A DNA stretch of 64,000 nucleotides, taken from the NCBI GenBank assembly GCA_038496445.1, contig JALMLS010000507.1:496001-560000 (forward strand). Direction: 5' to 3'. The notes beneath the pieces are model-generated. The model had not been told where the DNA came from. It made no database searches and saw nothing but the letters and a program-made list of their open reading frames with translations. Below, piece by piece: positions 22,388 to 27,379 of the stretch (the first letter of the stretch is position 1; each line of letters begins with the position of its first letter). The translations under genes and the position numbers were made by a program. The DNA is from Trichosphaerium sp. ATCC 40318 (Eukaryota; Protista; Tubulinea).

Positions 22388-25300
22388 CTAATATACACTG
22401 TATACGCAGTCAGTCAATACAACAGTGACATCGCGATCAACAGCCTGCCATCCACATCCGAGAACATCGATAAGACGGCTACCAGGGTATAGAGTGACTT
22501 GGAATACATTGCCAGAGCCGGAGGATGGTCCACCTGCGAAGCAGTATTGTGGAGTCAGACCTTCACTGCTTGTAACTGTAGCAGTAAAGTCTACTCTGCC
22601 AGTACCAGTAGGGAATCTGGCGACGAAGAAAGTGTTCATGAATTCATAATGTAAACCTTCTCCAATGTCTAAATAATAGTGTAAGTGGATAATGACTCAA
22701 CAATCGCTTGAAAAAAAAAAAAAGAAAAAGTGTAATCAACGTACATTGTGTGCGATCAACATCAAGCATAGCTACTGGACAAGCTTGACCGTCAACTGGA
22801 GGTGGTGTAGCAGTTGGTGCAGCTGTTGTTGGAGCAGCAGTTGGTGGAAGTGTTGTTGGTACAGTTGGTGGAGGTGGTGGAGGTGGAGGTCTGTAGTCTG
22901 GGATTTCTGGTTGATCACCACCATCGAAGATATTAACACCACATTCGCGGCAAGGTGTTACTGTGTTCCATGCCCACACCTTTGAGAAATCTGTGAATCT
23001 TTGTCTATCGTCACAACTGATACATTTATCTCTGTAAATAGCGGCAATGACTGGGTTGTTTTCCACAGGTGGAACTTCTGTTTGGATAGTACTCTTTCTG
23101 ATCATACATGTCGAGTAGAAATATGGATCATCTGGATCAGTTGTTGTGAGGGCTTTAGGTAGAGTTGTTGTTGGTTCTCTGGCTGTTACTGCGTAACACA
23201 ATAGAGCGTTGTCGTCATTAGCATTTGCTGATTGCAAAGCGTTACAGCTTGGTGGGTAGTAACCAGGGATGACGTAATTTGGTGGTTGCTTAGTTGGAAC
23301 AACAACTACGTAATCACAGTTTTCAATACCGGAGCAAATGTCAAGACAAGGTTGTGGGTTATTGTTGGTAACGAGCATGCAATCTCCGTGTACGGTTTGG
23401 TAGTCTGGAGTAAAGCAGTGATCGACACGCCTACGAAGAAATAAATAAATGCTACGACATTCCAAGAAAAACCAAAAAGAGAAAAAAAACATGTCAAAGA
23501 AGGCGTACTTGAATGTAGGTGCTGGTGGTGGTCCAACTGGGATAGTTCCGTATTTGTTTGTTACATGAGCTGTAGTAGATACTACATCAATGCAATCCCA
23601 GTATCCTTTCCAGTAATATTGTACAATGTACTGACCAACAGGGCTACCTTCTGGAATCTTAAAGTTTGCGAAATCAACATCGAATGGGCGACCCAATCCA
23701 AGAGCGAGTTTGAAACGGTATACAGCGAGAACGAACGGAATTGAAGGATCGCTGTATGATACGGCAATAGTGGAGGCAATCTTATCAGGGTTGTACTCGA
23801 ACATTCTGTTGTTCTTGTTTCTCATTGTGTAACGTTTTGTTCCCCAGAAAGGTTCTGCTGGACGTGGAATCCACTCTGGATCAGTTTCGAAGATCTCACG
23901 TGTGTATACACCATCTGGATCATCACCAGGTCTTACGTTGATACCGTCACCGCCAGCGATTTGACGATGCCATTGTTTGACGTCTGGAATGATAGCGCTG
24001 GAAGGAGCGCTTTCAATGTATTGGTCGAGGATTTCTGATGTCAATTGACCGAGTTTGCTTTCGTCTTCGGCTTTGATGATTGTGAAGTAGGCATGTGGTG
24101 TTTCTCCACGTTGATCAGAGAATATGTTACCAGGGTGACCGGTAGTCCACTCAATCTCGAACTCTTGTCCGTTACCGACTTGTACGTGAGCGATATCTTC
24201 AGTTCTTGGAGGGCAAGGACCGATAGTACTTCCTTCTTGAACAGCACGAGCATTACTGTTGCACCAATTGTGACCCAAAGCGCCAGTGAAGAATGTAGAT
24301 AAGCACAAAACTGTGATCAATAGGAGAGCGCTTGATCCGGTTGCCTTGCTTTTACCAGTAAAGAGCATAGCCATAGAAAGCATAGAGAATAACAAACCGA
24401 AGCTATAAAAAGAGTTAAAACAACAGATACGATAAGGTAAAAAGAAACAAGTGGCTAAAAAAAGTTGGTACATACCTTGTAGATTTGACAGAAGCTGGAC
24501 TTTGTGCAGCGCGAGCGCTTGCTGAACCTGGTACACCAGTACAAGTGCAAAGACGAGCTCTGCTTTGTTCTCTTGTATCACAAGTGACTTGTTGGCTGCA
24601 TGTGTCTTCGCGGTAGAGGCAGTGACTTCCCTTCTTGTATAATCCAAGGTTTGAGCATCCAGCGATGAAAGGAGCGTTGCAGAGCAAGTTGTTTGTATCG
24701 ACGAGAGTATCGATTCTTGCATCGTTGTTGGTAGCAGTTGAAGGTTGGTTGTTGCAAGTTCCACCGACATCATTGCAAGCCTCTGTGCAGGATTGTCCTG
24801 GAAGTGATTCGAATACAGTCTTTTCTGGAAGCTCAACATCTGATTCCTCGAGTTCAACATCTCCGCCCAAGTTAGGCCAGAAAAAGGCGCCAACATTGGC
24901 ATCACCTTCCTTGATGAGGCAACGGATTGTAATCTTTCCGGTTCCTTCTAAAGGAGCGACAAACTTGAATGTCGAAACCAAAGGCTTGAGGTCAGCGCTG
25001 AAGTGAGTAACAACGTGTGCGCAAGGGTGATCACCAAAACCGAAAGGAACGTGGTAGATTTCTAGAAAAAAGTAAGAAGTTGAAACGAAGCAAGAAAAGA
25101 CAAACTAGAAAGAAAAACTTCGAATTGGGAAGTTACTTACGAGGATTTTCAGGCAAAATGGCGAAGCGACCGACGCGGTTACCATCTTCATCTTCTGCGT
25201 AAAGTAAAAGACCACGGTACTACACAAAAACGTTAGAAAAAAAAAAAGTGCGAAAAAACCAAGTTTGAATTTGTGCGCAGAGAAAAAAAACACTTGCCTT

Positions 25301-26005
25301 CAATCTGTAGTCAACAACCTTGACGGTTACGTCCAAGATTTTTCCTGGTTGGTACGTATCATCTGGAGATGATTCGTCACCAACAAACAGTATAATACCA
25401 TCAGTGCGAACAGTTCTGCTAGCCCAAGACATAACAGCATCTGGATCGGTACATCCTTTTCGGTTTACTGAACCATCGACAATAGGCCACTACAAAAAAA
25501 CGTAAGTGAGGGATCAATAATCGGTGTTTGTTTGTAAGTTGATCTCGGTTTTTTTAATTTTCCGCGTCAAATCACATCGTTACTCAGTAAAATCTGGTGT
25601 ATTACCACGTGTTGAAAAAAGTCACGTCACGTGATGTGAAAAAAAAACTGTTTTGTCCAAACTAGCGGAAAAAAGGAGCGAAAGCTAAAAAGGTTCTAGA
25701 GTTAACATACGTCTTCTGGTTTGCATCCCCAGGTAGGGTAGTTGGCATCACAAATACCAACTCTTCCATGAGAAGCGCAGTATACGCTAGCAAAAATCAT
25801 AGTAGTAGCGATAAACAATAGAGTCTAAACAAGCAATATTAGCAACGAGACGGTTTTTCTTTTCGTGTATTTTTGGATGTTCGAGCAAAAAAAACGTTTG
25901 AAAACAAATAACGACTTTAAAAAAGAGCAAAGTTTGTCCTGCTCCAACAAAAAAGATAGATAAGAAGCAGGCCTTTACCATTTTTGAACTGGCTAAAGCC
26001 GCCAT
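22388..26005 (-). CDS. 952-aa secreted polyprotein-like product: signal peptide, Reeler domain, Cys-rich module, hydrophobic segment plus internal signal peptide, His-brace LPMO-like domain, Cys-rich domain, Pro/Thr linker, C-terminal beta domain
   Basis: Exons 26005-25979, 25824-25711, 25489-25298, 25219-25141, 25061-24476, 24402-23509, 23430-22745 and 22668-22388 have compatible phases and total 2859 nt. Reeler motifs: TYQPGKILDVTV, YRGLLLYAED..VGRF, CAHVVTH, FKFVAPLEGTGKITIR. LPMO-like motifs: ALG|HNW, EWTTGHPG, GQYIVQYYWKGYWDCIDV. Confidence 0.85.
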
Positions 26006-27379
26006 GAGGTGCGTTCCTTGTGTGTGCTCTTGTTATTTGATTATTTTTACGACAATGAACACTGTCGAAAAATGGGATTCAATACAACGAAACGACGCAC
26101 AATGGTGCCGCTGTTTAAACCCTTTAAACCCTTTAAACCCTTACAATATGCTTCACGTTCTACACCTGGCTTGAAAGTCTTCAATACTGCGTTTTACAAA
26201 AACTTGGATACTCAACGCATCAACAGTAAGTATTTGTAATTTGTTTGTAGGTCGCTACAGGCGTTGTTCTAGGCGAAGCGCTGTCGCTAGCGCGCTAGTG
26301 AAGCGGCAGTTCACATATTCACTCTTCCCAAAGTACTCCCTATGTATAGTGGTATTTACCTTTTACGCCAATACTGGATGGTTATACAAGGAAACAAAAA
26401 CAGTGCGGGGACCGGCGTTTTTTGTGGCTAGGGACAGTTCACACATGGATCTGGTGGCTTGAAACTAAATAACAAAAGGGAGTACTCCAGTTTCAGCTTT
26501 AGATCTCGTTTTTTATATCACGTGACGTGTTTACGACGTTACGGACCTCGAACTTTTTGTAGAGTTACAAGTTGTCTCAATAAATTGTCTCGTAACAAAT
26601 TGTGTTTATAATACACAGCGCAAGTAAAAATATGTCGACGCGCTTATACGCTACTAGCTGAGCATAAAAAGAAAGGGCGCTAGTTAAATCAAATCCTGTT
26701 TTGTATCACAACTTAATACATTTTTGTTTGTCGCCATGGACCGAAACAATACCCTCAGTAGTACGCCTAAGAGTATTACATTCAGTTCCATCTCATACAA
26801 GCAGTGCGAAATTTACAAACTTTTCAAAACGAAAAAAAAACTTTCTTGTACTCAAACCGCGTTGGTTTGTACTCGTAAGTAGAGAACATACTTGTACTGG
26901 AAGAAAAGTACAGGTACTTTTTAGGATTATTGTACTGGGGAACAGTTTGTACTCAAGTACTGAGTGCACGTAATTTTTTCCCTTGTATCACATGTACTTG
27001 TTGTCTCAAATTTCAGCCACCTTTGCGACGCTAGCAGCCATCGTACGAAATGTTTTTCTGGTATTACAACATGGATAAATACTACAATCCCGGAATATCT
27101 GTTTTTTAATATCTTTTTTGAACTTGAAACATAGTTTTTCACCGTTTGGCGTATGTCATATTGTTTTTACCCACATAGTTGTATTAAATTTGTTACACAC
27201 TTCACGAAACGCTCACTGACACTTTATCACCACCCAAGTTGGCACGTTGGTGACAAAAAATTTGAACTCAATGAATATGATAGTTGGGCGATATCTGCGA
27301 TGTCATTACAGCGCTGACTGTGCAGTCGAACCCAAAAAAAAAAAACGTCATGTTATGTTATTTGTCGTTTATTTTTTTT

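Follow-up and report, generated by a model that had tools for sequence, protein, structure and literature searches.

Organization of the gene and its transcript

The window analysed here is a 64,000-nucleotide stretch of the genome of Trichosphaerium sp. ATCC 40318 (assembly GCA_038496445.1, contig JALMLS010000507.1, positions 496,001 to 560,000 of the forward strand), and all coordinates below are counted from its first nucleotide. A single gene on the minus strand encodes a precursor in which a Reeler half and a putative lytic polysaccharide monooxygenase (LPMO)-like half are separated by two hydrophobic segments, the second of which has the form of an internal signal peptide and ends directly before a histidine, His377. 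The features on which the analysis depends are as follows.

22388–26005, minus strand: whole coding region, 8 exons, 952 codons plus stop (2859 nt)
25777–26005, minus strand: N-terminal signal peptide, residues 1–25, predicted cut between VYC and AS, interrupted by intron 1 (25978–25825)
24859–25489, minus strand: Reeler domain, approximately residues 48–205, exons 3–5, with near-invariant Met67, Trp69, Cys151, and His157
25220–25297, minus strand: intron 3, GC-AG, with the GC donor present in the sequence
24538–24801, minus strand: Cys-rich module, residues 225–312, ten conserved cysteines (kept in 45–51 of 51 sequences)
24476–24537, minus strand: Ser/Ala/Gly-rich linker, residues 313–333, from sequence
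24403–24475, minus strand: intron 5, 73 nt, GT-AG, joining the two halves
24360–24401, minus strand: hydrophobic segment 1, F334–F347, from hydropathy; putative stop-transfer or GPI-signal-like (glycosylphosphatidylinositol) segment
24330–24359, minus strand: basic turn T348–S357 (K350, K352), putative cytosolic loop that would correspond to the n-region of the internal signal peptide
24273–24329, minus strand: internal signal peptide h- and c-regions, A358–G376, ending A-L-G (-3 = A, -1 = G)
24270–24272, minus strand: His377 (codon CAC), predicted new N-terminus and His1 of the domain
23509–24272, minus strand: LPMO-like 'HNW' domain, residues 377–630
24135–24137, minus strand: His422 (domain position 46), candidate second brace histidine, invariant in 88 sequences

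Reverse-complement reading and splice-site testing placed the exons at 26005–25979, 25824–25711, 25489–25298, 25219–25141, 25061–24476, 24402–23509, 23430–22745, and 22668–22388. The first two introns are 154 and 221 nt long and the remaining five are 73–79 nt; six of the seven are of the GT-AG type and one is GC-AG. All seven were found as spliced joints in assembled contigs of public RNA runs (denoted X1, X2, X3, and X6 where they need to be told apart), the ends of which place the mRNA between ~26024 (5') and ~22284 (3'). The non-canonical GC donor of intron 3 is really used, because its joint (25219 to 25298, with ends CT..GC) is seen in RNA contigs from three runs (X1, X2, and X6). The joint of intron 5 (24402 to 24476, 73 nt skipped) is present in X1 (depth 284), X3, and X6, which represent three separate studies, and one RNA contig (record 20 of X6) spans 24272–24402 together with 24476–24591. 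Contig depths on the two halves are alike, i.e. 618 versus 802 in X1 and 84 versus 90 in X2.

The initial annotation, made from the letters of the window alone, had proposed an eight-exon, 952-residue single open reading frame (ORF), with which the rebuilt gene model is identical, and the junction sequence that it quoted recurs exactly in the rebuilt translation. It had named RNA across 24403–24475 as a check, where the spliced joint is found in three studies, and separate transcripts for the two halves as evidence that would speak against it, whereas one spliced RNA contains both.

A reading in which two proteins arise without proteolysis was also considered. According to it, the second half would have a separate transcript or would be translated from an AUG within the precursor (M340, M343, or M345), segment 2 would be an ordinary N-terminal signal peptide, and retention of an intron would give the Reeler protein a hydrophobic tail. 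Three in-frame Met codons do lie within segment 1, translation of the second half from the ATG at 24383 could place an ordinary signal peptide at its start, and retention of intron 5 would let the ORF end in a hydrophobic tail, STRYVPTFFSHLFLFTLSYLLF, followed by a stop at 24417–24415. Read-through of introns 1, 3, 6, and 7, however, yields equally Phe/Leu-rich peptides because the introns contain 51–55% T, so that such a tail is the default outcome of intron composition. In addition, the junction is spliced in three studies with similar depths on the two halves, a Met able to serve as a separate start is absent from the relevant stretch in 25 of 76 relatives with both segments, and the whole precursor of one relative (P0072, described below) is one uninterrupted genomic ORF. 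Translation seldom begins at an AUG that lies over 1 kb inside an mRNA, which counts against so deep a start here. Both versions of this reading, i.e. an internal start or own transcript and an intron-retention tail, are therefore regarded as very improbable. Two genes, or a switch by intron retention, were rejected as the principal explanation in view of the spliced joint, the compositional nature of the tail, and the lack of conservation of the internal Met. Because the introns are spliced in RNA contigs, the halves have similar depth, and the retained tail is unremarkable, the expressed form is the fused ORF, on one mRNA rather than from two genes; a minor retained-intron isoform may exist beside it.

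Three further observations concern the transcript region. The X1 and X2 contigs both stop at 24376 and resume at 24509 or 24569 (24376–24569), and the hairpin-coding stretch is covered in these runs by separate, lower-depth contigs only; this break probably reflects allelic variation between strains. A low-depth contig (29 versus ~600–800) at 25533–25720 crosses part of intron 2 and could derive from unspliced pre-mRNA or trace DNA. Finally, three tandem copies of TTTAAACCC are located at ~26114–26141, ~90–115 nt upstream of the apparent mRNA 5' end (26024), and could represent a promoter element.

The internal junction and its conservation

The junction reads ...SVKSTS / FGLLFSMLSMAMLF / TGKSKATGSS / ALLLITVLCLSTFFTGALG and is followed directly by HNWCNSNARA. 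All elements of a precursor layout suited to internal processing are present: an N-terminal signal peptide comes first and is followed by a putative stop-transfer segment, a basic loop, and an internal h-region that leads up to a -3/-1 site. Features of the GPI type, i.e. a linker rich in Ser, Ala, and Gly and an apolar segment of 14 residues, are also found, but the segment is internal rather than C-terminal; a GPI omega site could lie within the linker (residues 313–333).

With the sequence from His377 onward as query, an exhaustive HMMER scan identified 306 relatives at E<=1e-3, with best identities of 36–40%, and nearly all of their alignments start at query residue 1. His occupies aligned position 1 in 127 of the 128 homologs that reach it, within the motif HNW[ILVM]. 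In 37 relatives (N-terminal forms), this His is found at residue 14–42, directly after an ordinary N-terminal signal peptide. The internal set comprises 83 proteins (82 homologs and the present gene), in which the His is located at residue 88–921, mostly near 340–400.

The order Reeler–hydrophobic segment–signal peptide–His, for which the initial annotation had suggested a homolog check, is largely kept in the internal set: the aligned residue is His in 83/83, the -3/-1 rule holds in 83/83 (and in 37/37 N-terminal forms), and a first hydrophobic segment completes the hairpin upstream in 76/83, the remaining seven, P0038 and P0046 among them, lying under the two-segment threshold. Position -1 is occupied by Ala (69), Gly (10), or Ser (4), and position -3 by Ala (35), Val (21), Thr (9), Ser (7), Cys (7), or Gly (4), and positions -4 and -5 are mostly Pro, Ser, Thr, or Gly. 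As judged from these residues, the internal junctions obey the signal-peptidase rule at least as cleanly as the N-terminal signal peptides of the family. The apolar stretch before the His has a median length of 14 residues in the internal forms versus 13 in the N-terminal signal peptides (33 short forms), and the first hydrophobic segment likewise has a median apolar length of 14. The loop between the two segments (76 forms) has a median length of 5–6 residues, contains on average 2.0 Lys/Arg versus 0.34 Asp/Glu, and carries at least one Lys/Arg in 71/76, a composition consistent with the positive-inside rule, as would be expected for a cytosolic turn. The 15 residues preceding segment 1 contain 19% Ser, 16% Ala, and 8% Gly family-wide.

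The long forms are not artifacts. Several derive from assembled transcripts, namely P0007 (labelled Cavostelium), P0030 (Flabellula), and P0003 (MMETSP0206), of which P0003 and P0007 are recorded as complete ORFs, and many others are found on ~3-kb, transcript-sized contigs. P0072 is a single intronless ORF of 942 codons (2829 nt) on a genomic contig of GCA_024712045.1 (L001:1022-3850), and the loop between its hydrophobic segments is strongly basic (RRRNDGRGRRGG). The nearest named relatives are amoebozoan. The two-part design is a trait of many protists and not a quirk of one locus.

In a maximum-likelihood tree of the domain, internal forms are intermingled with N-terminal ones; supported branches require at least nine changes between them, and parsimony requires 15. 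This distribution indicates that the domain has moved repeatedly between internal and N-terminal contexts, the signal peptide–His junction always being kept.

The hairpin could alternatively be an uncleaved two-pass membrane anchor, in which case the Reeler and His domains would remain joined in a single chain, both facing the same side of the membrane, and His377 would never be a free N-terminus. Cleavage is here deduced from sequence, and the two hydrophobic segments with their basic loop look like an ordinary helical hairpin. Such an anchor, however, provides no reason for the small residues at -1 and -3 in 83/83 forms, for a helix-breaking c-region, or for a segment that ends exactly at an invariant His, and the second segment has the length of a signal peptide, not that of a transmembrane segment. 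Moreover, a cleavable N-terminal signal peptide is all that the domain requires in 37 relatives, and on the tree internal and N-terminal contexts replace one another. We consider an uncleaved anchor improbable.

A pair of relatives, P0039 (His at 438) and P0048 (His at 24), was also noted, the His domains of which are near-identical (tree path ~0.2) and are preceded by different signal peptides; this pair suggests a recent change of context.

The two halves of the precursor

The spliced N-terminal module (approximately residues 10–320) aligns to the N-termini of ~70 long-form relatives with E-values of 1e-27 to 1e-57. The predicted N-terminal cut is based on 43 aligned homolog N-termini, in which -3 is Ala/Val and -1 is Ala/Ser/Gly, followed by a conserved x-S-x-G. 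The separate exon pieces of this gene have no Pfam match, because the domain is divided over three exons. The Reeler assignment of the initial annotation is nevertheless borne out by Pfam on the homologs and by fold: relatives P0001, P0003, and P0008 pass the cut-off of Reeler (PF02014), P0170 and P0172 bear a precomputed PF02014 label, and a model of the closest homolog (predicted local distance difference test score, pLDDT, 91.2) matches the F-spondin reeler domain (E 4e-10, target template modelling score 0.73–0.76). Two of the Reeler-passing relatives additionally contain a DOMON domain. The Cys-rich module that follows the Reeler domain shows, in the homologs, a weak similarity to the C-terminal end of Glyco_transf_18. 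A word-indexed search for stand-alone Reeler proteins ending at segment 1, i.e. a possible ancestral GPI-anchored gene, gave five matches, mostly truncated.

Met67 (listed at 25287–25289) and His157 (25003–25005) of the Reeler domain are near-invariant (49/50 and 50/51, respectively) and are separated by ~90 residues, a spacing that resembles that of the b-haem ligands of DOMON cytochromes. Haem ligation by Met and His is documented for DOMON domains, and AIR12 is a GPI-anchored DOMON b-cytochrome (PMC10784544). The idea that the Reeler module is a DOMON-type b-cytochrome electron donor was tried and rejected, as the fold search gives the F-spondin reeler domain and not the CDH cytochrome. Because that search returns no cytochrome domains, a redox-partner role of the module is treated as a lead only.

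In the His domain, an alignment of 88 sequences (A1) has four invariant residues (H1, R9, H46, and G213), and N2, W3, P19, Y85, D168, D200, Y215, W221, G223, Y224, D226, and D229 are conserved to at least 90%. The T-shaped copper brace of LPMOs is completed by a second histidine, together with an axial Tyr or Phe; H46, Y215, and Y224 are the conserved candidates for these positions. An AlphaFold model based on A1 is confident (pLDDT 86.9, predicted template modelling score 0.88). Foldseek with this model gave no significant match; the best structural matches of the model are AA15 (first) and X325, and the top 50 include 16 LPMO entries (AA9, 10, 11, 13, 15, and 16), all aligned from His1 of the chain. 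Atlas neighbours, by language-model features as well as by shape, are protist clusters, some of which are labelled LPMO_10. In Pfam, the domain of this gene has no match (LPMO_10, PF03067, and AA9, PF03443, included), and the 88 relatives gave one weak AA9 match (E 0.0057). NCBIfam has no match for the domain, phmmer and profile searches against the PDB gave no link to known LPMO families, a profile of the N-terminal motif alone gave only chance matches in the PDB, and a word-indexed profile search for Pfam-labelled relatives returned four matches, none of them labelled. The motifs HNW-x-x-x-P-S-R and Y-x-D-C-x-D-V look similar to the end motifs of AA10, a similarity that no tool confirmed and that was not used as evidence.

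The remainder of the second half consists of the following features.

22890–23430, minus strand: Cys-rich module after the His domain, approximately residues 631–811, common to long and short family members
22797–22889, minus strand: Pro/Thr-rich linker, residues 812–842, from sequence
22388–22796, minus strand: C-terminal domain, residues 843–952 plus stop, divided by intron 7 (22744–22669)

The Cys-rich module has no Pfam match and gave a weak PAN/apple lead (score 0.83). The C-terminal domain ends without a hydrophobic tail and has neither a Pfam family nor an Atlas assignment.

Architecture and cleavage may be as proposed here while the His domain is not a polysaccharide monooxygenase, being instead a copper-binding or copper-handling domain of the X325/Bim1 type or binding some other ligand through its N-terminal His. 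This is a real but minor possibility, which we consider unlikely: AA15 is the top structural match, and the succession of the domain, a Cys-rich module, a Pro/Thr linker, and a C-terminal beta domain with no GPI tail is like that of a secreted carbohydrate-active enzyme.

Proposed processing and comparison with known systems

One spliced mRNA, one ORF, a conserved layout, and an invariant His after a conserved signal-peptidase motif are established for this gene and its family. On the strength of the single spliced RNA, the conserved His and -3/-1 motif, and the conserved hairpin, all of which support the overall interpretation offered by the initial annotation, we consider it probable that the precursor is split co-translationally in the endoplasmic reticulum by signal peptidase at the internal signal peptide, freeing a product that could form a His1 copper brace while the Reeler module stays membrane-bound. 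In this scheme, the N-terminal signal peptide (cut at ~C25/A26) would bring the Reeler domain and the first Cys-rich module into the lumen, segment 1 (F334–F347) would halt transfer, and the Lys-bearing turn would remain cytosolic. Segment 2 (A358–G376) would then re-insert as an internal signal peptide, and signal peptidase would cut after A-L-G376. The released soluble product would begin at His377 and consist of the LPMO-like beta-sandwich, the second Cys-rich module, the Pro/Thr linker, and the C-terminal domain; the amino group and imidazole of His1, together with the invariant His422, could form the copper histidine brace. The Reeler product would be anchored by the hairpin, its signal-peptide remnant perhaps being lost to signal peptide peptidase (SPP) as in IGSF1, or alternatively by GPI after transamidation at the Ser/Ala-rich linker; either type of anchoring may apply. 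The outcome would be two surface or secreted proteins produced 1:1 from one ORF. We lean, with distinctly less confidence, toward the broader view that this is a protist strategy in which the internal cut makes the His1 copper brace of an unclassified LPMO-like family and supplies, in a 1:1 ratio, a tethered Reeler protein with a Met/His pair, maybe a redox or metal partner.

Several points qualify this reading. P0038 (site 591) and P0046 (site 586) have an N-terminal signal peptide and only one hydrophobic segment, of ~20 residues, before a small-x-small site and HNW, and such single-segment forms are unexplained by a two-segment hairpin topology. The initial annotation's term 'LPMO-like' for the domain is favoured by three things only, namely a fold match of modest quality, the invariance of a further His, and the His1 position rule, and no LPMO-family sequence model reaches the domain (Pfam, NCBIfam, and PDB profiles). 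Finally, splitting at an internal signal peptide already has a cellular precedent in IGSF1 (PMC5841168).

Among the papers searched for such a case, none describes an LPMO or other histidine-brace domain placed after an internal signal peptide. Processing of this kind is known from viral glycoproteins and IGSF1, and the need of LPMOs for an N-terminal His is known as well, whereas the combination appears to be undescribed. The new part appears to be an internal signal peptide whose cleavage would create a metal-binding N-terminus, linked to a Reeler domain and conserved throughout a large protist family that is so far unclassified. Annotation and discovery pipelines for LPMOs presume that the catalytic domain lies right after the N-terminal signal peptide; a His-brace family buried 300–900 residues inside precursors would be overlooked or dismissed as inactive. 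If cleavage is confirmed, the gene would be a cellular parallel to the processing of viral polyproteins, but one in which the cut serves chemistry by producing a metal ligand, and a new LPMO-like family would be defined in protists, amoebae included, whose prey bear cell walls. That the domain is obligatorily paired with Reeler (sometimes DOMON) suggests a built-in partner protein, which gives the poorly understood Reeler domain a testable role.

The requirement of LPMOs for an N-terminal His is established, and in AA15 it is the signal peptide that exposes the catalytic His (PMC5823890). LPMOs, of which AA15 (TdAA15A, PDB 5msz) is closest by fold, and X325 (LaX325, 6ibh) have what is predicted for the HNW family: a beta-sandwich that opens with a His exposed at a signal-peptidase site and contains another invariant His, followed by a linker and binding-type modules; the structural alignments begin at His1 of the solved chains. 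Unlike these, the HNW family lies outside the Pfam, NCBIfam, and PDB-profile families, its second His comes just 45 residues after the first, and in most members its domain is internal and would depend on a second, internal signal peptide. The family starts with HNW rather than with the HG of AA10 and AA15.

In topology, the closest parallels are found elsewhere. In mammalian IGSF1, signal peptidase cuts the chain co-translationally at an internal signal peptide, and SPP also takes part in the processing (PMC5841168). IGSF1 shares with the layout proposed for the present precursor an N-terminal signal peptide, a lumenal N-domain, a first transmembrane segment, a short cytosolic loop, and an internal signal peptide, and yields two products per ORF. 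Its domains are unrelated, however, and it is one gene of mammals and not a broad family; its cut has no known chemical role for the N-terminus, whereas the predicted new N-terminal residue is invariant here and would be a metal ligand. In viral glycoprotein polyproteins (bunyavirus Gn/Gc, flavivirus prM-E, and alphavirus E2-6K-E1), stop-transfer segments and internal signal peptides alternate and are processed by host signal peptidase (PMC7926653). The combination of a stop-transfer segment with an internal signal peptide and processing by signal peptidase would be common to both systems, but the present gene is a cellular gene with introns, has a single predicted internal cut, and specifies products that are not virion components.

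As for the anchor, an internal GPI signal works in an artificial DAF-hGH chimera (PMC2288913), in which, as in the present protein, a linker of small residues precedes a short hydrophobic segment away from the C-terminus; the GPI anchor remains putative here. In contrast to AIR12, a plant GPI-anchored single-domain redox protein, the upstream module here has a Reeler fold and not a DOMON fold.

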